Source: Bugula neritina
Taxonomy: Eukaryota; Animalia; Bryozoa
NCBI GenBank assembly: GCA_964035545.1
Contig: OZ037771.1
Span: 4,928,990 to 4,992,989 of the forward strand
Reading direction: 5' to 3'
Length of the DNA stretch: 64,000 nt
Part shown: piece by piece, positions 1 to 40,837 of the stretch
Position numbering within the stretch: the stretch's first letter is position 1
Layout: each line of letters begins with the position of its first letter
Made by a program: the position numbers and the translations under genes
Notes under the pieces: model-generated
What the model saw: only the letters and a program-made list of their open reading frames with translations
Databases searched by the model: none
Told to the model about the DNA's origin: nothing

Positions 1-1827
1 TATCTTATTCAGGAGTTGTCCCTATCCAGTTAGTTCAGAAAAAATGTTGCTAATTCACACTGTCATGATTCGTAAGCTTTTAAATTGATTACATGATGGT
101 GGCTTTACACTACATGCAGACAGTTAATATTCTTAGCTTTCACATTACTTTGCTAAATAATGTTGATTATAGATTTAATATACGTCACTCTATGTACATT
201 CTAGACACCGTGCAACATGTGTATAGTAATACTATAAGAACAATGCATCAGTAGATCACCTCATAATAATATATAGAAAAAGAATGTCGTATATACCTGT
301 ATTTAACATCACGCGTTATACAGTTCTTTAAATAAAATGCAATAGTTTTATTGTTATTACAACTTTGTAAAATTATTTCAAACAACATTTTCGACAAAGA
401 TATGTGAGCTAGTTGCCATTGTTTACTCTTTATTTTTGATCAACTCAAATTGAGTGTAAGAAATCCGTTCATGCTGATTAAGCAAGCCAATGGAATGCTT
501 ATTGCTGGTAATAAGTTGACATTAAGTCATTGTAAATCGAAGGAGTTAGGAGCATTGAGTTCACAGTGTGTCACCCAAATAGGAAGTCTATAAGCATCAT
601 AAGGCATATAAAGGTCAAACACTTTGAAACCTGGTAGGTCTGCTATGTTTATGCACTTTTTATGCTAGCCTTAGTAACTATAGGCACTTAAGATTCATTT
701 ACCCGGGTGCATCCTTACCCTGCCTTGCTTGACTTTGAGACTACGAGAAAAAATTAGGACTTTACAAAATTGCGATATGTGCAGGTGTACACAAAACCTT
801 CGTTTTTTGAGAGGCTTTAAAGTACATAAATGAGTAAGTTTCATAAATGACAAAGAATATTAAATAATTGTAAAGCTTTTTATTTCCTGTGTAAAGATAG
901 CCTCTGGTCCAGAGGGATGAGAATGATAAGAAATGGAGCGTGTTAGCCCGCAAGGTTTCGTTCTTTTGAACACAAAGAACTTAGACTACATTGCTGAGTG
1001 TTAGCTGACAGTGTCTCCACCCTCCCCCCCCCCCCCCCCCCCCGTAATCCTCCTCCCACATTTACAGTTCTAATAGCCTGGGAGCATTTCTTTCTGGCTC
1101 AGGTCTATCAAGGGTAGTTGCACTATGACAATCTATATAGTGATACGTGTTGTGGACTTTTGCTAAATTTACTATAATAATTAAAGCAAAGTAACTGCAG
1201 GGTATAGTGAGAGCAGAAAATGTTATGAGTGAGATCACCCAACATATTTGTCAAGTACATGTTTAGTTAAAATCTGCTTTAAATTTTCTTGCATTTTTAT
1301 ATAACATGTTAGATAATTGCCAACAGTTCACTCAATTGCCATTAGCATCTAAAGCAAGTGGTCACTCGTATTGGATAGATACAGATGTACGGCTGCTAAA
1401 TTAGAATACAGTATCTTTAGTTATTAAAATAACATTCTACCTAACGTAGCACAGCATTTCATCTACTATCATTACGCCTCCGAAATACCTACCACAGGTA
1501 AGATTAATACTTCAATAGTAATAAATAAGAATTTTCCTGTTTTCAGACACAATATAAAAAAACACTGAGTGTTTCTTATAGCCTTTCATTAAAATGGTTG
1601 TAGGTTACTTCTTATTCTAAAGATTCTTAGTCTAAATATAAATTTTGAATGTGTTTTATTTATTTTGAATGACATTACATTTTGTAACACAACACAAAAA
1701 GTTTGTATACAAATGGTAACAAATCAACGAGACCGGCAGTGGGTGCCTTTTTAGTGTAAGCAAATTAATAGATAGGAAATGTCTGTCTATAGTTTCGAGT
1801 CATACCAAGGCTAAAGCATGCAACATT

Positions 1828-2193
<366 letters not shown>

Positions 2194-2829
2194 ATTTTTA
2201 ATAAATCATTGCAAAACTAATTTAGCTCAGAGCCGCGCTGACTGTATATATTTCCACAGAAACATAAAATGTATATAATGTACAACATGCAAAAAAGTTT
2301 CTTGCATAATGTGGAGAATCAATCAGTAAAAAGAAATTGTTTTTAACAAAGTTTCTTTCATGCTATATTTAGCTTTTGACAACCCCTAGAAATATGAGCC
2401 CGAAAATTGTGGCTTTTTGCAATAATATACTTATAATTTGATTTTAGCACTAAGGGAAAATATTTGTCTAAGGTAAAATGTAAGCATATGCTATAGAATG
2501 GCATTGGATTACAGTTGAGAAGGTTGCGATTGCATCAACAATTATGTGTTTTTATAAATGCATATCATGCAGCTGTTCACATGTGACTTTCAATAGAACT
2601 TGACATTTTATTATAAACTCCAACAAAAAATAATCAAGTGGCAATGCAAGTTATAGCATTGTAGCGCTTCAGGCTATTGAACGTATTGGCTATAGACAAT
2701 ATAGTATTTGGAAGGTGCTAGTGGCTAATACTAGACACCATGATATGGTAGAGTGTAAATTTAACCAATATTTATATTTGTAAGGATTTTCTACTTTTAC
2801 CCAATAGAAATTACTATTTCTGTTACTAC

Positions 2830-2928
2830 CATGACTGCAACTGCCTCTACTACTGCTACTGCTACTGCTACTACTACTGCTACTAATACTTTTACTACTG
2901 CTGCCACTACTAGTTTTGACACTACTGC
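2830..2928. repeat. (CTA/CTG)n trinucleotide repeat
   Basis: ctactactgctactgctactg... just upstream of the first AChE coding exon. Confidence 0.85.
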
Positions 2929-3023
2929 AAAAGCGCTGCCTATAACAAACTGAATTTAGAGCAAGCACATTCTGAAGCTGTCTTACTCACTTTTTATTGT
3001 TATTCTTAGACTAGGGAGACACC

Positions 3024-6000
3024 ATGGATTGGTTGAGTTACTGTGCATTGTGGGTTTTCTACTTCATGGTAGTGACAGTAGGTTCTACTGAAGACTTTAC
3101 CAGACGTCGACTTCACAAAGGATGGGTCACTGGTAACCGTCACAGTGTTCTCGATGGTATTATTGGTAGGTACAAGTACTAGCTGCGTCTATATAAATGC
3201 ATAGATATCCTAAAAAATTGCGTTGTGTTGCGTTTCGAAGTTAATCGCCATTAATAGCTTTATGATTGCCTCGATAAAATGGTAAAACTTACAGAGTGAT
3301 TTTGCTTACTGTGTTTGAAAGATATTCACTTAAAAAAGTTTTGCCAATGTGTTTGGTGATTGATGTTTTAGTGCATGAGTACCTAGGTATCCCAATGGGC
3401 AAACCACCAATAGGGAACAGAAGGTTCAGGAAACCAGAGCCAGTGGACCCTTGGATGGGACAGTACAATGCCAGCAAGCGATCAAATGCTTGCATCAACT
3501 TCAAAGATATTCAATTTGGAGGTATGCATAAACAAATGAAAATAAATACAAGAAGTATTTTACTACAATCAAGTGAATACTATATTTAAAAAACATAGTG
3601 CCTTGCAATATAATATGTGCTATGACTACAAATCTAAGGAGATTTATTTAAATTTTAAGTTGGATATATTTTGAAAACCCCATAGTCTTTTCTGTTTGGT
3701 GCAATATGAAAATAACAATACACAGCATTTTGCAGTTTCTAGCAGTAGACAAAAAAGTACAGCACAGCATTATAATGCTTGTTTCTTGTATGCCTATTTT
3801 AGACTTTTATGGGTCGGATGTCTGGAATCCAGAAGAACCCAGGAGTGAGGACTGCTTATACATAAATGCTTGGATTCCAAACCCAGGAGAGATGACAGAG
3901 AAAAAAGCCATCATGGTTTGGATATATGGCGGCGGATTTTATAGCGGCAGTTCAACCTTGGACATATATGACGGTCGTTATTTGGCAGCTAGCCAAAATG
4001 TCATCGTAGTCTCCATGCAGTATAGATTAGGAATCCTTGGATTTCTAAACTTGGAAAGCGAAGAGGCTCCTGGAAACATGGCGCTGTTTGATCAGCTAAT
4101 GGGTCTGCAGTGGGTACAGGACAATGCAGAGTACTTATATGGCGATAAAAACAACGTCACTATTATGGGGGAGAGCGCTGGCTCGGTTTCTGTAAGTCTC
4201 CATCTGATATCGGCCAAGAGCAGAAACCTCTTTAACAGGGCTATTCTACAAAGTGGTGCAGCAACAGCAAATTGGGCTTTAATGACTGTTGAAAGCTCAT
4301 GGTACAGGTTAAATAAGACAATTTATAGTAAAGACATTGGGTGCTCAACCATCACCACCCACGTGCCCACTCTGATGAAGTGCCTGCGCTCCGTGCCCGC
4401 TGGTGTTCTGTTTGACTATTCATGGGCTCCGTCAGGAATTGCTCAGTTCAGCTGGCTACCGTCTGTTGACCATGACTTTCTAACTGAGCTACCAGAAACG
4501 TCTCTCCGTAAAGGAAACTTTAAACGATGCCCAATTCTGATTGGTTCAAATGCTAATGAGGGATCATCATTTCTGGTTTATGAATTTTATTATCAAGGCT
4601 TTGGGCCAATTTTCAAGAGCAAAGAAATAAACTTTACCATTCCCCATTCTCGTTTTGTGAATGACATAAATCGGGCATTTAGGTATTACCCACAGTGGCC
4701 AACAAGCATGAATCAATTCGGAAAGGACGCAATAGCTTTCCGATATACCGATTGGCGAAACAAAGATGATAGTCTATTAAATCGACACAATATTGACTTA
4801 TCAGTTGGAGACTACCACTTCCTCTGTCCAACCAATGCTTTCTCCCAATACTTTGTCAATGTCGGATTGCCCGTCTACTACTATTATTTCACGCATCGCT
4901 CGACGAGAAACCCTTGGGGCAAGTGGATGGGGGTGATGCATGGTGATGAAATATTCTTCACTTTTGGATTACCAATCAGACCTGATTCCCAGTACACAGA
5001 AGACGAGAAACTTCTCAGTATGCATATGATGCAGCTCTGGTCTAACTTCTCTAAAACCGGGTAAGCTAGGTTTAGCTAGCGAACAAAGTTTATCTTGTAA
5101 TATTAAAGGTTTGCTAAAGCACTTATAAACTTTTGATATATGATGAATTACTTAGAGATTTGTAGTACAAATTGATGTCTATTGGGATAGAAACTACTAA
5201 TGGTTATCTACATGCATATAATCCTTAATAGAATGCTATCTTTTATTGCGCACTTAGATGTACCTCCAATGTTGCATGCATGAACTTAACACACTAAGTT
5301 ATATACTATTATACAGTATATATAATGCTGTATACTTGTCTGTATATAATTAGGATATATCTGTTACTGTAACTGTCAATCTGTCTTGTTTATATCTCGA
5401 ATTCCTAACAGCCATGCTACATATCTGCTAGTTGAGCTAATTGATAGCTTCAACTTTACTCTGAACATCTCAATAATAATAGAATGTATACTAATATTTG
5501 CAGCTGCATTCCGTACCTTCATTTGTATGTCAGAAAGTAGAGTATTATTAGCTCAATCAATCTCAATTGCAAGAGTTAGCAAGGCTGTGAAGAAATTGAG
5601 AAAAGCCTGTTTTATAAATGAGCAATAACAAGTCATATTTTTGCTAGGAAGTTAATTGTTGCCCTGAAGTCTAAACTAACATTCTTACAAATAGGTAATT
5701 GAATAAACTAGACTAGAATTTCTTTGTCATAGCCTGAGGTTTTTTTTCGTTGTTCCTGTGTCATGCTTGGGCTCCTAGAAACAGCCCAAACTCTGGTATG
5801 TCTGCTAGCAAGTAAACTGAATGCTCATATGTTCTATCGGGATAATGCAGTTATACTAACAAATATGTTTTAAAACAATTTTAAACTGCAGAATCTAAAT
5901 TCTAAACCTATTGGGTCACAGCAATATAGTAGCAAGATTTGGTAGTCATGACAACTGTAGAAGCAGTGTTTTCTTTCCCTCTACTAGCTGCTTTGTATGC

Positions 6001-29400: not shown

Positions 29401-31743
29401 TTATTATGAATATTATTATTATACTTGAACTTATTCAAATTGAATTACATTCGATATTTCAGTATGAGTATAGATTATGTTAAATATTCATATTCAATAT
29501 AAAAGTAGCGCTCCGCTGACTGTGGACCACTTAACATGCCCAGACTTAAAATTTCTATAAATAATCAATATGAAAATCAAAATGAACATTTAATACTATG
29601 AACTTCAAGTTAATGATAATAATAATATAATATTCAATAAGATTATCACAAGAACTAACTGAAAGAATTACTAATAGTATTAGTGTAATACTGAACCCTA
29701 TTTAATAGTATTATCAATGTGAGTATGAGCATTTAATTTTGAATAAAAATAAAACACTCAATACTAAAAATTTCTAGTTAAAAATATCATCTTTTTAGCA
29801 CCAGCTGTTAAAAATGAAAGTCAAGAAAGCATTTGACCTACATAGGCTAGAGTAAATCACTAAATCAAAATGAAAATGTAATACTATTATTATTTATTAA
29901 TACAAATAACTTAATAAGTATATAACTCGGATTGATTGATATTTTAATCATCATCATGATTATTAATATTATTAAATTCAAAAACTACAGCATTAGAAGT
30001 AGAAGTATAACTTTAACTATAAGTATAAGTTAATAACTACTAGTGAATTATATAATTATTTAGTAGCGTAAATGAGCTATTTTCAGTATAATTACCTGCT
30101 TTGTAGTGATTTAATCATAAAGTCCAAAGATAAAGATCAATATTAAACTACAGCTAAGGAAATTAGTTGCGTTAAAAGCGGTTTTTGTAAACTGCGTAAA
30201 CGGAAAAGCGGAAATTTCTGCAAAAACGGCGGAAAAGTACTTAACCGAGCAATTTTTTTAGTAATCGCTGCGTAATACTTTTGTGTATGCACGAAGCATA
30301 GGTTTTAGTTGAAAAATGACACAACTCTAAAATTAAAATAATCTTGCATTAAGAAAACCTCGGCAACGTGTTAAGTACTTAGTCTATTTCATCCCTCACA
30401 ACCAACGTGATATCTTCAACTCTACAAGTACACCCCTTCAACTGAACAGCTTATATCTTTTTGCTTGAACCTAAAATTCTCACTTCGACTTTCCAATATA
30501 ACAAATAAAGCTAGAGATGGGTAAGCTCAATCTGCTTATAAATTATTAATAACATTTTTAAACTAAATAATTGTCGATTAAAATAATAATCTAAATCATA
30601 TTAACGATTAAATTTAATAAATAATAATTATAATATTAATATTAATAGAAATATTAATAATACTAATACTAATACTAATAGTAATACTAATACTAATAGT
30701 AATAGTAATACTCAATAGTAATAGTATCACTTTTACTAATACTAATAGTAATACTAATAGCGTTTAATTAATAATATAAATAATAATTAATATACTTATA
30801 CTTATAGTTATAGTGATAATTATATATTAACTTATAGATTACGATATCATTTCAACTTTAGGTATTGAATTACATTTATTATAATTATAATTATATTACT
30901 AATACTAATATTAATACTAATAGTAATAGTAAATGTAATACTATTAGTATAGCTATTAAACTTAGTGCTACTAGTTCTATTACTATGTCTATTGTCTATT
31001 AGTATTACTATTACTATTAAACTTAGTATAAGTATAAGTATTAGTATTATGTTAATTAATATTTTAGTATTACATTAATTATTAATATTAATAATAATAA
31101 TATAATCATAATGATAATCATTGTCATTATATAAAGTGTAGTATTATTATTAGCCTATTATTTTAATATAATTTTGTATTATTAATAATAATAATTCATA
31201 ATTGTATTGATACTGTAGTAGTAATTCACATCTGCTTATCTTATGTTTATTTTAATTCATTTAATTATATATGTAATTCACTAACCAGTAATTGTTAAAT
31301 GGTATTGTGATATTAATATAAGTTTATAATTATACTTATGGTATATTGATTAATAATTAGTAAGTCTAAGACAAGATGGATAGTAATACTTATACTACTT
31401 GAGTGTTTTATTCAAATCGTTGAGAAAAAGTGCATCAAACTTTCACATTGATGCAGTTGAACTTAAACATATATGTGTTTAATGAATTGGCTATAACACT
31501 CAGTCACATGTTATCTTAAAACCCATTGTATACCCTGTTAAGACTCATTTTGGTCTTGTGGTGCAGATATAGTGTATTTGACATTTGTCTTGTGAAAGTA
31601 ACAGTCTTTTTCATATTAAATAAGCCAAAAAGTCTAGGTTTTTTTTAAGCCAGATTGTTGTTCTGATTATATAATTTGAAGTCAAGAATATTCATTGTTT
31701 AGCATTCATTGTAATGGTCCTGTTGTTTTGATAATTTTTACAG

Positions 31744-32876
31744 ATTATAGAGATATAACTAATTTTGGAAATACATGCTTTTTAAATGCATGTATTCAAA
31801 CTATAAGCCGCACACCACCGCTACAAGTAAATTCTGAGTACATAAATTTTAATTTATCTTTTTCTTAGGGGATTAATATGACTTTAAACCTAGATTTAAA
31901 GTAACTTGTTCTATTTATATAGGAAATAAATGGTCATGTTTTTTCATACTGTAATCGAGAAGTAGATCACTGTTTTGGTCTTTTGGTCTCACTTTAGTGT
32001 TTTTTTTGGTTATATATGTTTCATTTGTTACTGTGCCAGTAGCAATTCCACAGATCAAGGGCTGAATTTCATGGCTAACGATAAATTTCAAATCCCTTAT
32101 CAAAAACCAAATGTATAATTGACATTTTAATCAAGAATAGCCACCAATTAAGGCTTCTTTTACATACATATTTTGTTTTTAGAGGTTTTACCTGATTTCA
32201 TGAATAATGAGCAGCATGATGTTGCCGAGGTATTAATGGAAGTTTATAACATGCGATGCAATAGGTTGGGTAACATTAACATTGCTTGAACACATTTGTT
32301 GCTTATGTATAGTTTATAATTCCTAAAGTGACAGTTAGTAGGTACACTAAACACTTATGCTCTTTTCTTCAATGGGACAAAATTGTTCTGGTCAGAAGTT
32401 GAATAGTTGACTAAATGTCATTTCTGCAATGCTGAAACAGCATTTGCTCAGTCAATGAATTTATTACCAGTTCCTCTATTAGAGGTGATTTGGCAACAAA
32501 TAGAACATTTATTTTATTGGCACTATAGCATCACGTTTTTGTATTGGCTATTTTATTTGTTACAGAGTGAGGTCACACTGCAGGGCATCAATTCAGTTCC
32601 AAGAAACTAGATGGATATGTTTTCGAAGGGTACTTTGTGCATTTTATGTTTACATAATATTTTGGACCATATTCTTGAGAATTTTTGACTACTGAATAAA
32701 TACTCATGTTACTATTTTCCAACTCTAGTAGTCTAGATATAACTGTACAACTGTCTCAGTTTACAAAGCTTCCAAAAGTCTTAGCTATCACTTTGAAAAG
32801 ATTTGATGAACCAGGAGTCAAGTTAACTAAAAACTTGGAAGTACTGGATTTGCTTTATATAACAGATAAGAGTAGG
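31744..32876 (+). pseudogene. Decayed multi-exon ubiquitin-specific protease (USP/C19) inside the TIR element
   Basis: AG/GT-bounded pieces in USP order: Cys box ITNFGNTCFLNACIQTI (31744-31826); FMNNEQHDVAE (from 32183); KLFWSEVE*LTKCHFCNAE..NLLPVPL (stop at 32404); frameshifted KKLDGYVF; FTKLPKVLAITLKRFD..KLTKNLEV (to 32876). His box not confidently seen. Confidence 0.8.
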
Positions 32877-32999
32877 GTGAGAAGTATTTAACAAATACTT
32901 GTATACAAAGAGGCACAATACAAGAGCAGTTTATTGCTGTTGCAGGAACAAAGATTTAATTAGCTCCAAGAATAAATGCAATAGGTATTACGGACATTC

Positions 33000-33688
33000 T
33001 GGTTCTAATAACTGTGATAAAGGTACAGCTGTATAATCAGCTATATTGTTTATTTTTTGCTGTGTGTTTTGTCATTAGCTTTGCACTTGTGAAGAAAATT
33101 GTAATTTGTTGATTGTTTGTTTTGGCAGCTTTGTTTGTGTTCAAGAAGAGAATCCTTGGAATATTTCCCTGCGCTACTCACTGTTACAAATTCATAGGAC
33201 TTGCTTGCTAGCATGTGCAAGTCCTTTGAAGTTGACTGCTGAGTTGACAGAACAGTAAACCACCAGCTCCGTCACAAGACTCCAATGTAATCAAGTTGCT
33301 TTTTACAAATTGGTTTGGTTTCAATGTAGCTGTCACACCACTGTGATTGCGATTGTCACTTTCAAAGTAAAGAATGACAGCTGATTGTTCCATTATTATT
33401 TACATATTTCCTCTAGATCGTATTGTAGCATCAAAGAAGACCTACTGAGAACATATTGATTTATTTAGCGGTATTTTAACTGTTAGCAAGACTTTGCAAA
33501 ATGTATACATTCATATTAGGTGTTTAGGGCATTAAAGCTTTGATAAGCTGTTGCATATTTGCAATTATATGCAAGGCGTTATAAGCCATGACGAAGTTTC
33601 AGTTGTTCAGCATTTTGGTGACATTTCGTCAGCAAATATGTTTTTGTAATTTTTATTTGCTGTGCCTTGAACACATCTTTATACAAAA
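33000..33688 (-). pseudogene. Heavily decayed coding remnant, possibly the element's transposase
   Basis: Begins after a tttttag acceptor at 33689. Coding-like composition with several stops (e.g. NVYILQSLANS*NTAK*INMFSVGLL*CYNTI; STQQSTSKDLHMLAS). The identity is inference only. Confidence 0.3.
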
Positions 33689-35016
33689 CTAAAAAATTGA
33701 TTTTTTTTTTTCTTCTTACTTTTACTTATATTATTGCATCATATTTTATGTTTTATTGTATAAATATCAAATAGTTCTTCAAGTTATTGTGTTCTTTGAT
33801 TACATCATGCTGTACAGTAATACATACAAGTTACTAGTATGTACATTTTCACTCACATCTTTACAATATTATTTTAAAGAACAAAAATTTAAAACAACTT
33901 TGCTGCCATGGCTATTCATTTACTTCTAGTGAGTTATCGATCAAAGTTTTGAGCACAAGGCCCAAGTTTGAGGTAGTGGAAGTAAGACACTTTAAGCACA
34001 AAGCTAAAAAGTTCTGCATTTTAACCCATAAGTATTAACTTGGTTTATTTATCAAATTATTTATTTGATGAAATTATACTAATTGAGTCACACTATTTGA
34101 AATAGCATTGTACTATAAATACTAACGATAGTTCTACGTTTTATAGTTAAAGTTTGAAAATACTCATGAGCATGATAACAATAATAAGCATTTTTTTATT
34201 ATAACAATTACATGCAACGATAAATATTAACTTATTTTCACTGTAGTTTTTAATGAGATATTTTAATGGGAATTTCGATAAAAAAAATAATATTATGCTG
34301 GCTAGATAACTTAAGTCGTACGAATGTTAGTTGAACAACTAAAATTTAGTTAATAGTAAAACATCGAAGGTTTTGGTATCTATGCAACTACGAGAATCAC
34401 AATTATTGGGCTCGGTTTTGTAGTTTAAAAGTTAATTATTAGCAGGTAAAAATGTAATTGTCAACATCATAATAAAAACTAGTTGTGTAACTAAACTCTT
34501 TGTGCGCCGACGGCTTGGATGTTTCGTGATTTTATGGCCACGCTCACGCAACCAGATTTTATGTTTAAAAGTAGTCGTTAGAAGTTTTTTTGAGTTGTTT
34601 TCTCCTGTTTACGTTTCCGCCACTTTTTTCCGCCTTTACGTTTACGCAGTTTACAAAAACCGCGTTAAAAGCTAACTTAATCTTTGCAGCCAGCGCCAAA
34701 AATAGCTAATACTAAACTTAGTTTCAGAAGTAGGCTTCCTATCATGCGAGCAGAATGCAAGAGCTACCTTTATTAAACAAAGAATTATTTGTAGGATTCC
34801 GCGCTATGAAATGTTTTAATTTCATTTTCGTAATAGTAATGATAACTCCGAGTCAACTTGACTACGATCCGCCATTTTGAAGAAATATTTAATGCATAGT
34901 TACCAACTTTAGAGTTGATTTTGAGGTTGAAGGAATTAGCAAATGCTTGCGAAAATAAGATATTTGAAATCCTCGAGTTTTTCTGTATAAGAAAAGTTTA
35001 AAATGTGAGAACTGGC

Positions 35017-35290
35017 TGTTGAATGTGTTGCCATTGTGTTTAGTATTTATTATGAAATACGTTATTGATTGCTGATTTAAATTATCGAGCAAACTGACTG
35101 ACTGATTTAATTATTTGATAATAAAATATTTATTAGAATGAAAAACAGCGTGATGGTTTTGTATAATATAAAACGGAAGAGAAGGGGTAAACAAGTATAC
35201 AGCGATTCTAGTACAGCAATTAGTTAGTACATTGTCACGTGATTGTTATGAATGTGATTAGCGATAGGATCGCATGATTGTTTCTCAACA
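35017..35290 (-). repeat. 3' LTR of the copia element
   Basis: Direct repeat of 39387-39660; no differences seen by eye. Confidence 0.95.
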
Positions 35291-35297
35291 CGCCCCC

Positions 35298-38200
35298 TCA
35301 AGCATGTGATTTGATAGCTAGTAGCTCCAGGGCAATTCTGAGATTGGTTTTAGGCAAGCTCTTAGTCATGACATTGGCAGGGTTCTCAGCTCCTCTGATG
35401 TGTTGGTATACTATGGTGGTTTGCTCTCTGACAATGTGGAATCTAATGTCAATGTGTTTGCTCCTCTGATGTGAGTATGGTTGTCCCTTGGTGAGGGCAA
35501 TGGCTCCAAGGTTGTCAGTGAAAAGTGTGTTAGGGTTAGGCTGTTTCATCTTGAATGTTTTGCACAAAGTCTGTAGGAATAGCATCTCCTTTGTAGCTTC
35601 GGCTAATGCCATGTATTCGGCCTCGCATGATGATAAGGCCACTGTGGGTTGTCGTCGGCTGTTCCAACTTATAGGGGCTCCACCCAGTGTGAATACATAT
35701 CCTGTAGTTGATCTTCGTGTAGAGGTTTCTCCGCCCCAATCTGCATCCACATAGCCCACTAGTTCTTGTTGATTGGGAGTGAATCTCAGATTGAATCCTT
35801 TTGTACCTTTAAGGTATCGTAGCAGCCGTTTCAAGGCAGCAATATGTGCAGGCCCAGGTCTTTCTAAGTGTTGGGAGAGCTTCCCAATGATCCATGCTAG
35901 GTCTGGACGTGTGGCAGTCATTAGGTATATGAGAGAACCTATAACTTGTCTGTAGGGGTAGTCCTTTGAATGCTCATGTTCGTCGTCTGTTGCTTTTTCT
36001 AGTTGTAAGTCCTTTTCAGCAGGAGTATATACAGGGTTGCAATTTGCCATATTGTAGGTGTTCAGCAGCGTGTCTATGTAGCGCTCCTGTGACATAGTGT
36101 ACTGGTCCTCATGTCTCCTGAAGTCTATCCCCAGGAACCAGCTTAATTCTCCTCTATCATCCATGTTGAATTTTTGTTGCATCATAGATTTGGTTTGTGT
36201 GATTCTGTTGTCGTCTCGGCAGCAGAGAAGGATGTCATCAACCCAGAAAAGAATGATGATGTTGGCTGATTTATCTGAAGGGTCCTCTTTTGAGTATAGG
36301 CAAGGGTCTCCAGCACCAGGTGTGAAGCCTTGCTCCTTGAGGAAAGTGGTCAGTGTTTGGTGCCAATTGCGTCCGCTTTGCTTGAGGCCATAAATGGATT
36401 TGTTGAGACGACAAGAAAGCTTCCCTTGTTTGTTGGTTTCTTCGTACCCTTCAGGCTGTTGTAGATAAATTTCCTTATCGATTGGTGCGTTTAGGTACGC
36501 TCCTTTAACATCTAGTTGATGTATTTTCATGTTTTCATTTGCTGCTTTCTGTAACAGCAATCTGATAGATGTGAATCTGGTGGTTGGACTGTAAGTTTCG
36601 TCATAGTCAACTCCTTGTATTTGTGAAAATCCTTTTGCTACATATCTAGCTTTATGTTGAGTTTCACCTGGCGTTTTTCCCTGTTTGAGGGTATAAACCC
36701 ATCTGCCCTTGGTCTCTGTCCTGTCTTCAGGTAGCGGCTGGATAGACCAGGTGTTTGAATCACGTAGGGTGTTTATTTCCTTGTCCATGGCTTTCTTCCA
36801 GGCTTCTTTATCTTTTGAATTTACAGCTTCTTGGTAGGACAGTGGTATGTTTGCCATCAGTGAGCAAGCATAGTCAGTGTCTTCTATGTCATAGTCCTGT
36901 AGGTATGTAGGAGGCTTTCGTTTCCGTTCCGATTTACGTGGTTCAGGTTGGTTGGTGGCCTTTGCCGGATCTGGTGCAGGTTCTTGTGGTATGGTATTCT
37001 GAGTACCATTTCTGCTGTTTAGTGCGGGTCCTTGTGGCATGACGTTCATTGCGTCATTTCCGCATGTTTGTGCAGGTTCTTGTGGCATGGTATTCTGGGT
37101 ACCATTTCTGCTGTTTTGTGCGGGTCCTTGTGGTATGGCGTTCATTGCGTCATTTCCGCATATTTGTGCAGGTTCTTGTGGCATGGTATTCTGAGTACCA
37201 TTTCTGCTGTTTTGTGCGGGTCCTTGTGGTATGACGTTCATTGCGTCATTTCCGCATATTTGTGGTATGACATTTCTGGATGTAACAATTTTCTGATTAG
37301 GGGTAAGTATAAGGTAGCCTTGGGCCTTTGTGTTGACACCAAGATATATGCCGCTTTGTCCGCGGTCACTGAGTTTTAACTTATTTCCCTCTGAAAAGAA
37401 TGTGCATTGGGATCCAAAATTGTGAATTTTCCTCATGTCGGGTAGCGTGCCTGTGAATAACTCATAAGCTGTCTTTCCCGTCCGTCTCTGGTAGCTTCGG
37501 TTTCTTAGGTACTTAGCATGGTCAGCGGCAAAACTCCAGAAAGTCTTGGGGAGATTTGAATCTTTAAGTAGGCATCGTGCTGTGTCCATTATGGTGCGCC
37601 AAGTCCTCTCTGATTTACCATTCTGGTAGGATGAGTAGGGTGCTGTAGTGGTGTGTTTGATTCCCCTCTCGCGTAGCACGGCTTCAAATGGCTGTCCAAG
37701 GTACTCCATGCCGTTGTCAGTATGGATCTCCTTCACATTTCCTATAGGTGCCACATCTGCAATGAATTGCTTAAGTGCAGTGGTGGCATCACTTTTGTGG
37801 CGTATATTGTAGGTGAACAACATACTGGAAAATTCATCTATGAAGTTTATTATGTAGTTTTGTCCTCCTCTAGCAGTTGGTGTGATGGGTCCGCATAAGT
37901 CAGAGTGTACACGTTGTAGAGGTTGTGTAGCTAGTTCAGGTTTATCGTCTTGTTTGTGAGGTTGTTTGGTGATTTTACTTTCGTCACATGTCTTGCATGC
38001 AATTTTTAATTTTGCTCCAGTTATGGTCATACCTGTTGTCACTTTCTCCAGCTCAATTATGTCATTGGTGTTCATATGACCCAGTGCCCTGTGCCAATCG
38101 GGCAGCGATTTTGCGGTGTTTATTGAGTCACCTGTATGGGTTGTCTTGAGGAAGTACAATCTGCCTTTGGGCATAATTGGAAAAGTTATCCTGTCGACTG

Positions 38201-39404
38201 TCAGTATATTTTTCTCTCTAGAGAAATGTACTTTTGCCCCTTTTTGTGTGGCGGCGTGGACTGAAAATAGGCTTGTTGGTATTGTTGGTGCTAGCAAAGC
38301 GTCTTTTAGATGAATCTGCTGCTCCATGTTGTTGTCATCAGTAATAGTAAACTGTGCTGTGCCTTTGGCTACAGCCAGCTTGTTTGTTTTGCGACCATCT
38401 GCCATCTCTATGTAGTGGTTCTCAGGCGTGAAGCTCTTATCAAAACTAATGAAGTTGTTCTCATTGTTCACCAGATGACTTGTAGCTCCGCAGTCCACCA
38501 TAAGCAACTGTCCTTCTTGAGATTTATCTTGTGTGGCTATGTTGCATTGGTTTGATGTATTCACAGTGAAGGCATATGTGGCATTTGCAGATGAAATTTC
38601 AGTTTTACTTGTCCTTTTCTTTGTCCTGCAAACTGATTCGATATGTCCAGCTTTCTTGCAGTAGTTACAAAATAGTTTGTGCTTTGAGTAACAATCTTTT
38701 GTAGAATGATTGCTTTTACCACAAGCAGTGCACTGTTTATCACGTTTGCTAGTGGGTTTGAAATTGTCTCTTCCTTTAAATACCATGGCTGTAGATTGAG
38801 AGCACCTTGCCGACTCAGTAAGGTCAAAGTTGGTTAGAGCTGCTTTGAACTCTGATAGGGTTTGGTTTTTGTCAAGTTGCGTATGTACTACAACAAAAGG
38901 CTGGTAGGATGTTGGTAATCCTTTCATAATCATTGCGATCACCAAATTGTCACTAATATTTTCCCCAGCAGACTTGAGGCCTGCTGAGTAGTTCTCAGCA
39001 CGAATCAGGTAATCTGTAATGTCTTCTGTATCATTCATTTTTACAGTTGTAAGTTGTTCATAAAGAGTTAATATTCTAGGCTTTTGTGTACTTGCATAGT
39101 GTTCTTTTAGAATTTTGAATGCTTTTCTTCCATCGTCTTTGGCATCTCTCATCACAAGTTGAAGAGACTTTTCGTCTAAGACTTGTACAAGCTCAGCGTA
39201 AGCTCGCTTATTCTTTTTGTTGAAGTCAGCAGCGTTATCTTCTCCTTCTTCTTTGGGTAGAAGTGCGGTGTGTACTCCTTCATCTTGTGTGTACAAGTAT
39301 GAAGTGAATCTTGTTTCCCAAATTGAGAAATTGTTTGAATCACCATCAAAGAGAAGCCTGTGTTTGAAGCCACTGGGCCCATAACCTGTTGAATGTGTTG
39401 CCAT
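35298..39404 (-). CDS. Copia gag-pol polyprotein (1368 aa)
   Basis: Two CCHC knuckles, protease DCGAT, WHRALGH..CKTC, integrase (HSDLCGP, HTDNGMEY, GKSER), RT (QLDVKGAYL, YGLKQSGRNW, WVDD) and RNase H (GYVDADWG, EAEY). Domain order PR-IN-RT-RH is the copia order. Confidence 0.96.
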   Translation of the reverse strand: MATHSTGYGPSGFKHRLLFDGDSNNFSIWETRFTSYLYTQDEGVHTALLPKEEGEDNAADFNKKNKRAYAELVQVLDEKSLQLVMRDAKDDGRKAFKILKEHYASTQKPRILTLYEQLTTVKMNDTEDITDYLIRAENYSAGLKSAGENISDNLVIAMIMKGLPTSYQPFVVVHTQLDKNQTLSEFKAALTNFDLTESARCSQSTAMVFKGRDNFKPTSKRDKQCTACGKSNHSTKDCYSKHKLFCNYCKKAGHIESVCRTKKRTSKTEISSANATYAFTVNTSNQCNIATQDKSQEGQLLMVDCGATSHLVNNENNFISFDKSFTPENHYIEMADGRKTNKLAVAKGTAQFTITDDNNMEQQIHLKDALLAPTIPTSLFSVHAATQKGAKVHFSREKNILTVDRITFPIMPKGRLYFLKTTHTGDSINTAKSLPDWHRALGHMNTNDIIELEKVTTGMTITGAKLKIACKTCDESKITKQPHKQDDKPELATQPLQRVHSDLCGPITPTARGGQNYIINFIDEFSSMLFTYNIRHKSDATTALKQFIADVAPIGNVKEIHTDNGMEYLGQPFEAVLRERGIKHTTTAPYSSYQNGKSERTWRTIMDTARCLLKDSNLPKTFWSFAADHAKYLRNRSYQRRTGKTAYELFTGTLPDMRKIHNFGSQCTFFSEGNKLKLSDRGQSGIYLGVNTKAQGYLILTPNQKIVTSRNVIPQICGNDAMNVIPQGPAQNSRNGTQNTMPQEPAQICGNDAMNAIPQGPAQNSRNGTQNTMPQEPAQTCGNDAMNVMPQGPALNSRNGTQNTIPQEPAPDPAKATNQPEPRKSERKRKPPTYLQDYDIEDTDYACSLMANIPLSYQEAVNSKDKEAWKKAMDKEINTLRDSNTWSIQPLPEDRTETKGRWVYTLKQGKTPGETQHKARYVAKGFSQIQGVDYDETYSPTTRFTSIRLLLQKAANENMKIHQLDVKGAYLNAPIDKEIYLQQPEGYEETNKQGKLSCRLNKSIYGLKQSGRNWHQTLTTFLKEQGFTPGAGDPCLYSKEDPSDKSANIIILFWVDDILLCCRDDNRITQTKSMMQQKFNMDDRGELSWFLGIDFRRHEDQYTMSQERYIDTLLNTYNMANCNPVYTPAEKDLQLEKATDDEHEHSKDYPYRQVIGSLIYLMTATRPDLAWIIGKLSQHLERPGPAHIAALKRLLRYLKGTKGFNLRFTPNQQELVGYVDADWGGETSTRRSTTGYVFTLGGAPISWNSRRQPTVALSSCEAEYMALAEATKEMLFLQTLCKTFKMKQPNPNTLFTDNLGAIALTKGQPYSHQRSKHIDIRFHIVREQTTIVYQHIRGAENPANVMTKSLPKTNLRIALELLAIKSHA
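36975..37270 (-). repeat. 96-bp x3 in-frame repeat in the copia IN-RT linker
   Basis: GCGTCATTTCCGCAT at 37051, 37147 and 37243. Confidence 0.92.
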
Positions 39405-39660
39405 TGTGTTTAGTATTTATTATGAAATACGTTATTGATTGCTGATTTAAATTATCGAGCAAACTGACTGACTGATTTAATTATTTGATAATAAAATATT
39501 TATTAGAATGAAAAACAGCGTGATGGTTTTGTATAATATAAAACGGAAGAGAAGGGGTAAACAAGTATACAGCGATTCTAGTACAGCAATTAGTTAGTAC
39601 ATTGTCACGTGATTGTTATGAATGTGATTAGCGATAGGATCGCATGATTGTTTCTCAACA
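39387..39660 (-). repeat. 5' LTR of the copia element
   Basis: Direct repeat of 35017-35290; contains the gag ATG at 39404. Confidence 0.95.
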
Positions 39661-40837
39661 CTGGCAAAAAATTTCAATTTTTGGTTTTTCAAAATTTAAC
39701 CTTCATTTACTAGACTTCATGAATGCCGCCAAGTTCCCGGTTTTGTCGCGAGGGGTCACATATTATATCTAATATTATTGTTTAATCAAATTAGTATTGA
39801 AACTAGTTTGAACGATATGAAATTACAGCAAGAAATTTCTTTTTGGTTAACAATCACTACAAATTAAAAATTATTCTCTCATAGAAATTGAAGTTCATGC
39901 CACTTTAGAAAAAATATCATTCCAAAATAAATAGCAAAAACAACATATGCATAGTTTAAAGATAGCTCAATCAATGTACGTATTGCGAAAATGTTAACAC
40001 AGAGTTTTTATCTGATATTTGACATCCATGGCTATCATTTTGTAATGTTATATGTAGTATATATGTTAATAGAATAAAAATGGTTGAAGGTACCCCACCA
40101 GCATCATATAGTCTGACATGAGCTAGCTCCTGGAAGAGTCCTAGACACAACTAATATGGAAACTTGAGCAGCTTCCACTATTGTAATTACTTTGTGTTAA
40201 TTTAATCTGCTTTGCTGTATGTCTTCCCTATCAATTCTTGTTATCCTCATATTCTACTAGGCCTGTATTTATTGCATTAATGCTCTAACATTGTTAGAGC
40301 TACACCTGCTTAACAAGTTAGAGGTTACTTTCAGTACAGTTTTCTATGCCAATAGCTTCAATAGAAGATAAATCCTAAAAGCTTGAGTTTTCAGTTTTCA
40401 TGAGAGCATAACTCCTTCTTACTAAATATTTTAAAGCTCAAAATGTTTTAAAAAAGCTACAACTGCATCATATTATACTGGCAAACTTTTTATTGAAAAC
40501 AGAAAACTGATAAAAAATGCAAAAAGTTTAGTGAATATCAGCCATTGGTCGAATAAAAATATAACATAATTATATAATATGTACAGAAAAAACAATTACA
40601 TTATTTGCATTTATATACCATGGAATGTTCAAATGAGATAACATAATACAACATAGAATGCAAATGTTATATTTGCATAGCAACTGCTACATGCTTTTCC
40701 CGTTTGCAGAAGCACACTTTATTAAGATACCCAAAGTAGCTAGAATATCTATAGAAGTAGCTAAAAATATCTATAGGCGCAGCTACAATGTCACTACTAT
40801 ATCTAAGAATAGAAAAAGTGCGAGTGATAAGAATCTG

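Follow-up and report, generated by a model that had tools for sequence, protein, structure and literature searches.

The window analyzed here is a 64,000-nt stretch of the Bugula neritina genome (GenBank assembly GCA_964035545.1, contig OZ037771.1, positions 4,928,990 to 4,992,989 of the forward strand), and the subject of this report is a DNA transposon at 30179-34662 of that window. The element is bounded by 24-bp terminal inverted repeats (TIRs) and a 9-bp target-site duplication (TSD) and contains six decayed exons of a ubiquitin-specific protease (USP, peptidase family C19), a deubiquitinase, all on the plus strand (Table 1). An initial annotation of this DNA had recorded perfect TIRs and the TSD, both of which could be read directly, as well as a USP Cys box, QHD box, CxxC finger and LPKVLAITLKRF motif, all of which we found on the plus strand. 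It had also described a second decayed open reading frame (ORF) facing the USP. A decayed ORF is present and corresponds to the C-terminus of a transposase, but it has the same orientation as the USP and so does not face it. The transposase remnant (C7:4962381-4962614) shows 62% identity, and its two in-frame stops are one TGA and one TAA.

The copy had further been called dead, and the lesions bear this out. There is an in-frame TAG in exon 3 and a frameshifting 10-nt deletion in exon 4, and the His box is missing because a 2.66-kb internal deletion took out its exon. In addition, the second zinc-ribbon CGC in exon 5 is altered to SSS, the Cys box is the only one of the catalytic boxes that is kept, and the region encoding the transposase domain discussed below has been lost. 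The window copy is a broken non-autonomous element, unable to make either the USP or the transposase.

An intact USP with both Cys and His boxes, together with a transposase between the same TIRs, was the combination that the initial annotation had suggested looking for, and it was found in an element on another contig, L032 (C1:703710-712976, 9267 bp), the single intact copy in the genome. L032 has seven open USP exons, bounded by canonical AG/GT sites and consistent in phase with one another, and downstream, on the same strand as the USP, an open 732-aa transposase ORF. The catalytic boxes of the L032 USP read GNTCFLN, SGHYVTY and FDDNK and are accompanied by two CxxC pairs; when the exons were searched singly against the Pfam UCH family, E values of 2e-9 (His box), 6e-4 and 9e-4 were obtained. 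A segment at L032 ~4663-4925 (..CKYFSFYLFRD, then a Ser/acidic tract) was considered as the last USP exon, but its phase mismatches the phase-0 donor of exon 6 and we do not claim it.

The sole transposase family matched by the L032 transposase was Pfam MULE (Mutator-like element, PF10551; E 8e-4). Eight homologues, 29-43% identical to the L032 transposase, were recovered from metagenome and read-archive assemblies. The MULE domain matches six of the nine family members (best E 5e-6), and D314, D383, E501 and C404xxH407 are invariant in the nine-sequence alignment. A D, D, E series with CxxH after the second D is the MULE signature. The TSDs are 9-10 bp across the 16 copies described below, inside the Mutator range of 8-11 bp. 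Given the MULE matches and the 9-bp TSD, we therefore assign the element to the Mutator superfamily. Membership in another TIR superfamily with an 8-9-bp TSD (Merlin, hAT or P) would be in keeping with the short TIRs, since those of classical MuDR elements, at ~200 bp, are far longer than the 24 bp seen here, and with the MULE score of the L032 transposase, which at 20.3 bits is under the gathering score of 27.6. However, the absence of any other transposase family match, the D..D..E spacing with its CxxH, and the TSD length in 16 of 16 copies make such an assignment highly improbable.

A genome-wide TIR search had also been proposed. The 23-nt TIR core GGTTTTTGTAAACTGCGTAAACG gave 41 matches in the 216-Mb assembly versus 0 for a reversed control, and the genome holds at least 16 TIR-paired copies, the window copy and 15 others that we retrieved, with USP sequence in other TIR-bounded copies as well. 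The core is identical at both ends in 14 of the 15 other paired copies, the exception being the left end of L037 with one mismatch, and the outer C/G of the 24-bp TIR is present in all 15. Each of these copies has its own TSD (a perfect 9-mer in 13 of them, with a mismatch in one and 10 bp long in another). Ten of the copies are ~4.5 kb long and 95.5-100% identical to the window copy, and all ten have the TAG stop, the exon-4 10-nt deletion and both large deletions in common; the founder of this subfamily was therefore already dead. The 4.5-kb copies differ by 0-2.4% and form two clusters (0-0.09% within, 1.3% between), with one older copy at 2.3%. The window copy is identical to L031 (C1:196642-201123, on another chromosome) at 4484 of 4484 bases, while the TSD and flanks differ; copies at C5:8880368 and C8:12869318 are also counted among the identical ones. 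Since dead copies at separate sites are 100% identical, their movement was very recent and the transposase was necessarily supplied in trans. The dead 4.5-kb copies have thus undergone very recent trans-mobilization.

The remaining copies are more varied. In L034 and L037 the same element is interrupted by a nested Gypsy-type retroelement; L036 is a 1.2-kb miniature, and L035 and L042 are variants. The nested insertions (L034 1810-5763, L037 3961-7794) are different Gypsy/BEL-type retroelements, each with an open gag-pol ORF of ~1300 aa, and both went into the AT-rich, microsatellite-like stretch of the MULE (window equivalent 30540-31400). We also noted a more decayed derivative at C6:6708812-6712755, nearer to L032 (exon 5 97% identical over 29 aa), in which a USP exon-5 fragment adjoins a stop-riddled transposase and the deletion history is unlike that of the 4.5-kb subfamily.

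Two origins had been put forward: the USP was either the relic of a transposon family that possesses a deubiquitinase of its own or an animal Pack-MULE-like capture. A comparison of L032 with the window copy gave a dN/dS of 0.26 over 182 shared codons (bootstrap 0.15-0.45, with no replicate reaching 1), and therefore most of the 13-17% divergence between both lineages arose under purifying selection on the protein. Searched against the genome, the L032 His-box exon found only itself, with a best host USP match of E 0.014, and exon 5 found transposon copies only. No donor was detected among the host USPs of the genome, which showed nothing past generic USP similarity to exons 5 and 6. A one-off capture, in which a host USP fragment decays neutrally and has no role for the element, would explain why the USP of the window copy is clearly dead and why the non-autonomous copies carry fragments only, and host gene fragments are captured by MULEs according to the accessible portion of one survey (PMC6446971). 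However, the USP is intact in L032, no bootstrap replicate of its dN/dS reaches neutrality, no host donor is present in the genome, cellular USPs are at most ~32% identical, and the same gene, with shared intron positions, stands upstream of transposases just ~40% identical to each other, all of which render a capture very unlikely. Of the two proposals, the family with its own deubiquitinase is the one that stood: the USP is a long-standing transposon gene under purifying selection in the autonomous element.

USP exons were found upstream of the transposase, on the same strand, in three further elements, L047/L051, L050 and L052, on contigs encoding relatives of the L032 transposase. The transposases of the USP-bearing elements, L032 included, fall into three deep lineages, ~40% identical to each other. 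Exons 5, 6 and 7 are present in L047/L051, whereas L050 has an exon-3-like exon, exon 5 and a His-box exon reading through to ..AYIICFEM, and L052 has an uninterrupted 269-aa USP ORF (UCH E 9.6e-20, profile positions 2-253 of 254). The intron between exons 5 and 6, before 'EV..YR', agrees in codon and phase among L032, L047 and L050; a donor after 'DD[ND]K' is common to L032 and L047, and an acceptor five codons before N[FY]GN of the Cys box is common to L032 and L052. L052 might be a spliced transcript, as it is without the introns found in L047, yet its 5´-end acceptor is kept and there is no poly(A) tail. Compared with each other, the element USPs share 44-50% identity in the His-box exon. 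Every lineage whose contig includes the respective exon retains the catalytic Cys (GN[ST]CF), His (GHY) and Asp (DD), and the same holds for the QQ[HD]D box and the two CxxC pairs.

A HMMER search with the L052 USP against 1.84 billion representatives found cellular USPs at no more than ~32% identity outside its own lineage. The top scorers were merely multi-USP-domain proteins, the best solved relatives were USP36, USP5 and USP15 (E ~1e-6), and a word-index search with the same protein found only a fragment of its own lineage. Conceivably, the three transposase lineages gained the USP independently, or swapped it by recombination, instead of inheriting an ancestral gene. One element, L046, branches amid the USP-bearing lineages and has no USP detectable with a local USP profile in the 5.8 kb upstream of its transposase, and recombination between divergent Mutator elements has been documented in maize in the available part of one report (PMC10401008). 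Nevertheless, intron positions and phases are common across lineages, the His-box exons resemble each other more closely than the domain resembles any cellular USP (44-50% versus at most ~32%), and all four elements agree in gene order and strand. On balance, separate gains appear unlikely, and we favor an ancestral USP gene of the family. The local USP profile found none in L054, L055, L056 or L059 either, where the upstream sequence is too short to count as absence. By eye, the sequence upstream of the L046 transposase seemed to include a ubiquitin-like domain, but this had no Pfam support and was discarded.

An AlphaFold2 model of the L052 USP had a pLDDT of 86.6 and a pTM of 0.85, and Foldseek matched it to USP35, USP46, USP36, Ubp8, USP2 and USP21 (E 1e-21 to 1e-18, TM 0.74-0.82). 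From this model we are confident in predicting that the L052 USP adopts the canonical USP fold with palm, thumb and fingers carrying a zinc ribbon. Pfam gave UCH and UCH_1 only (E up to 0.1) and no Peptidase_C98 match, and no chain of the SUMO-specific USPL1 was among the sequence or fold matches listed for this protein.

We also observed acidic, Ser-rich exons between the USP and the transposase (L050 6434-6763; L052 ~980-1060; L046 3665-4054 and 4687-5004). By eye, their IDLT / VILLSSDDE-type motifs resemble what we take to be SUMO-interaction motifs (SIMs). The USP might be inactive or re-purposed, for example as a ubiquitin- or SUMO-binding module or a transposase regulator, given that the domain is minimal (~250 aa) and very divergent, that the exon for the last beta-strand was not found in L032, and that these SIM-like exons occur in L050, L052 and L046. 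Still, retention of the catalytic Cys, His and Asp, of the QQ[HD]D box and of both CxxC pairs, together with a predicted fold that is a complete palm-thumb-fingers USP, speaks against this reading, which we consider rather unlikely.

Several observations weigh against the view that this is a Mutator-type transposon with the USP as a family gene. Besides the sub-threshold MULE score of the L032 transposase and the lack of a USP upstream of the L046 transposase, the start exon and last USP exon of L032 were not found by motif scan and reading of candidate acceptors. In L052, the USP ORF spans 41-850 and the transposase ORF 732-3128, an overlap of ~118 nt in different frames; a single fused USP-transposase ORF is not claimed for L052, as the sole joining splice would be a 37-nt intron, judged too short to assert. 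Finally, L032 stands alone as an intact copy, and its interior is just 83-88% identical to the 4.5-kb copies, so that it is not their direct parent. Taking these points into account, we regard it as highly probable that the element is a Mutator-type transposon and that the USP is a gene of its family.

In the explanation we propose, the autonomous form encodes, on one strand, an intron-containing USP/C19 deubiquitinase followed downstream by a DDE transposase. The window copy, having kept its TIRs and subterminal GCGGAAA repeats, moved in trans as a cut-and-paste Mutator-like element, with the 9-bp duplication presumably made upon insertion, to judge from the anatomy. The L032 transposase is most likely the mover of the 4.5-kb copies, whose ends are identical to those of L032. 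Targets of ubiquitin removal by the USP could be the transposase itself or, at the donor and target sites, chromatin or repair factors, and this might shield transposition from ubiquitin-dependent host control. A comparable role has been proposed for Ulp1 and OTU proteases in other DNA transposons. It is plausible, at somewhat less than even odds in our judgment, that the USP is an active deubiquitinase and shields the transposase, or else chromatin and repair factors where transposition takes place. More tentatively still, an animal Mutator clade may have kept the USP as a required transposase partner since before the three ~40%-identical lineages split, the two being co-transcribed and possibly joined by a SIM-like linker. 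If this holds, DNA transposons would have recruited a protease that removes ubiquitin or ubiquitin-like proteins for a third time, independently of Ulp1 and OTU, and the family would point to ubiquitin removal at the site or on the transposase as a general requirement or counter-defense of cut-and-paste elements.

Mutator elements with Ulp1 domains have been described from hydra, lancelet and plants (Bao, Kapitonov and Jurka, PMC2836005), and OTU domains in Ginger1 and Helitron elements, for which the authors proposed a tie to ubiquitin-regulated DNA repair (PMC2836005). The same study suggested that ubiquitin and SUMO pathways take part in transposition and listed a Trichomonas vaginalis protein, XP_001314237.1, in which an IS5-like transposase (transposase_11) is fused to Peptidase C19 (PMC2836005). 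Full-text searches of the literature on USP, deubiquitinase or protease with MULE, MuDR or DNA transposons found no USP in a Mutator element (Repbase and Dfam lay outside this search). Of two MULE surveys spanning eukaryotes and arthropods, one (PMC13359780) and the accessible portion of the other (PMC6446971) nowhere mention ubiquitin or protease. According to the initial annotation, a C19/USP protease is not known as standard cargo of an animal TIR transposon; this agrees with the absence of a USP-in-MULE report from that literature, but has to be qualified by the C19 and IS5-like fusion of T. vaginalis (PMC2836005). Both the strategy and the superfamily are known, and the novel part is the different protease family, a USP (C19) in Mutator.

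The closest parallels are the Ulp1-carrying Mutator elements (Kaonashi/KI-MULEs, VANDAL20, and the hydra and lancelet MuDR-type elements), which belong to the same superfamily, have a 9-bp TSD and likewise possess their own ubiquitin or ubiquitin-like-deconjugating cysteine protease beside or fused to the transposase and amplified with the element. They differ in that their protease is Ulp1 (clan CE, C48), of a different fold from the USP of the window family (clan CA, C19, Pfam UCH), in a default substrate that is SUMO rather than ubiquitin, and in their TIRs, which are unlike the short 24-bp TIRs seen here. OTU-carrying Ginger1 and Helitron elements also combine a deubiquitinase-type cysteine protease with a DNA transposon, kept across many families, but have another transposase superfamily and an OTU (C85/C88) instead of a USP (C19) protease; the Ginger1 protease forms the C-terminal domain of its transposase, whereas the USP of the window family lies upstream and may or may not be fused to the transposase. 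To our knowledge, the role that Ulp1 or OTU proteases play for their DNA transposons has been shown by nobody. The T. vaginalis protein resembles the window family in tying a C19/USP to a DDE DNA transposase; it is, however, IS5/PIF-Harbinger-like and not MULE, comes from a protist host, and is one annotated fusion protein, whereas the window family is TIR-bounded, multi-lineage and recently mobile. Pack-MULEs share with it host-like coding sequence between MULE TIRs that is amplified as non-autonomous copies, yet their cargo consists of recent host fragments with an identifiable donor, usually neutral, unlike the window family, in which there is no donor and the gene is complete in the autonomous copy, under purifying selection and shared by distant lineages.

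USP (C19) thus joins the proteases recruited by Mutator elements, which strengthens the case that transposons have repeatedly used interference with ubiquitin signaling as a strategy. As for the window copy, it is an ordinary dead passenger whose value lies in the evidence of very recent mobilization; the interest is in the family, which, with one intact USP-plus-transposase copy, many identical dead copies as mobilization reporters, and distant relatives, offers a compact test system. The question it poses is whether deubiquitination protects the transposase, steers excision-gap repair or counters host silencing.

The ends of the window copy are better kept than its interior: relative to L032, the first 200 bp are 96-97% identical, as against 83-90% in the interior. 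GCGGAAA occurs twice near each end, at distances of 30 and 51 nt on the left and 30 and 43 nt on the right, with no occurrence in the 4-kb interior of the copy. Judging from sequence, the well-kept ends and the repeats fit what would be expected of transposase-binding ends. Within the interior, the short Ser/Asp-rich exon that is kept at 32946-33022 has an in-frame 3-nt indel relative to L032. Between this exon and the transposase main exon lies a block at 33134-33345 that is ~98% identical to L032, whereas its neighbors are only 83-88% identical. Neither an Rfam family match nor an unusual RNA fold was found for the block. The window copy and L032 both have an open 60-aa ORF on the minus strand (33208-33393), in which the few differences between them are mostly synonymous; the ORF has no family match.

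Table 1. Features of the transposon copy in the window (window coordinates) and the USP exons of L032 (element coordinates)
Feature	Position	Strand	Remarks
Left target-site duplication CGTTAAAAG	30170..30178		9 bp; direct reading; identical 9-mer past the right end
Left TIR CGGTTTTTGTAAACTGCGTAAACG	30179..30202	+	24 bp, perfect
Left subterminal region with GCGGAAA repeats	30203..30260	+	Candidate transposase-binding sites
AT-rich degenerate microsatellite-like spacer	30540..31400		TAATAC/TAATAG units
USP exon 1 remnant, Cys box GNTCFLNACIQ	31744..31826	+	UCH PF00443 E 4e-5; aligns with L032 1961-2043
USP exon 1b remnant	32009..32080	+	4-nt deletion at start; aligns with L032 2240-2315
USP exon 2 remnant, NNEQHD (QQHD box)	32183..32264	+	Aligns with L032 2418-2499
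USP exon 3 remnant, first CxxC pair (CHFC)	32376..32484	+	In-frame TAG at 32404-32406
USP exon 4 remnant	32566..32629	+	10-nt deletion, frameshift
USP exon 5 remnant, LPKVLAITLKRF	32723..32876	+	UCH E 7e-3; aligns with L032 2970-3123
Deletion 1 junction	32918..32921		L032 3167-5823 gone (2.66 kb), His-box exon included; blastn breakpoints
Short Ser/Asp-rich exon (NKDLISS...), kept	32946..33022	+	Acceptor and donor present; presumed place in the gene model
Block ~98% identical to L032 (6060-6275)	33134..33345		~205 nt
Transposase C-terminus remnant	33392..33630	+	Residues 654-731, ~78 codons; 2 in-frame stops
Deletion 2 junction	33413..33416		L032 6340-8284 gone (1.94 kb), the DDE core of the transposase
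Right TIR	34639..34662	-	24 bp; exact reverse complement of CGGTTTTTGTAAACTGCGTAAACG
Right target-site duplication CGTTAAAAG	34663..34671		Direct reading
L032 exon 1	1961-2043		Cys box
L032 exon 1b	2240-2315
L032 exon 2	2418-2499		QQHD box
L032 exon 3	2610-2718		CxxC
L032 exon 4	2804-2877
L032 exon 5	2970-3123		CGC and LPKILAITLKRF
L032 exon 6	3497-3622		HKGSSPTSGHY...FDDNK; UCH E 2e-9

Elsewhere in the window, a host gene at 3706-5064 is represented by an open 452-aa ORF with a strong carboxylesterase (COesterase) match (E 4e-107). A Copia-type long terminal repeat (LTR) retroelement lies at 35016-39661, 350 bp downstream of the MULE. Its open gag-pol ORF of 1368 aa (RVT_2, rve, Retrotran_gag_2) runs on the minus strand, its LTRs, of 276 nt each, show 100% identity, and the insertion appears very young. 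In the wider assembly, ten or more Wnt loci mark the host as an animal. A number of small contigs (C34, C83, C63, C14, C43, C117, C230 and others) have USP-domain matches with many in-frame TAA/TAG and almost no TGA codons, a pattern that suggests that the animal assembly includes contigs of a contaminant, epibiont or the like that uses a ciliate-type genetic code.

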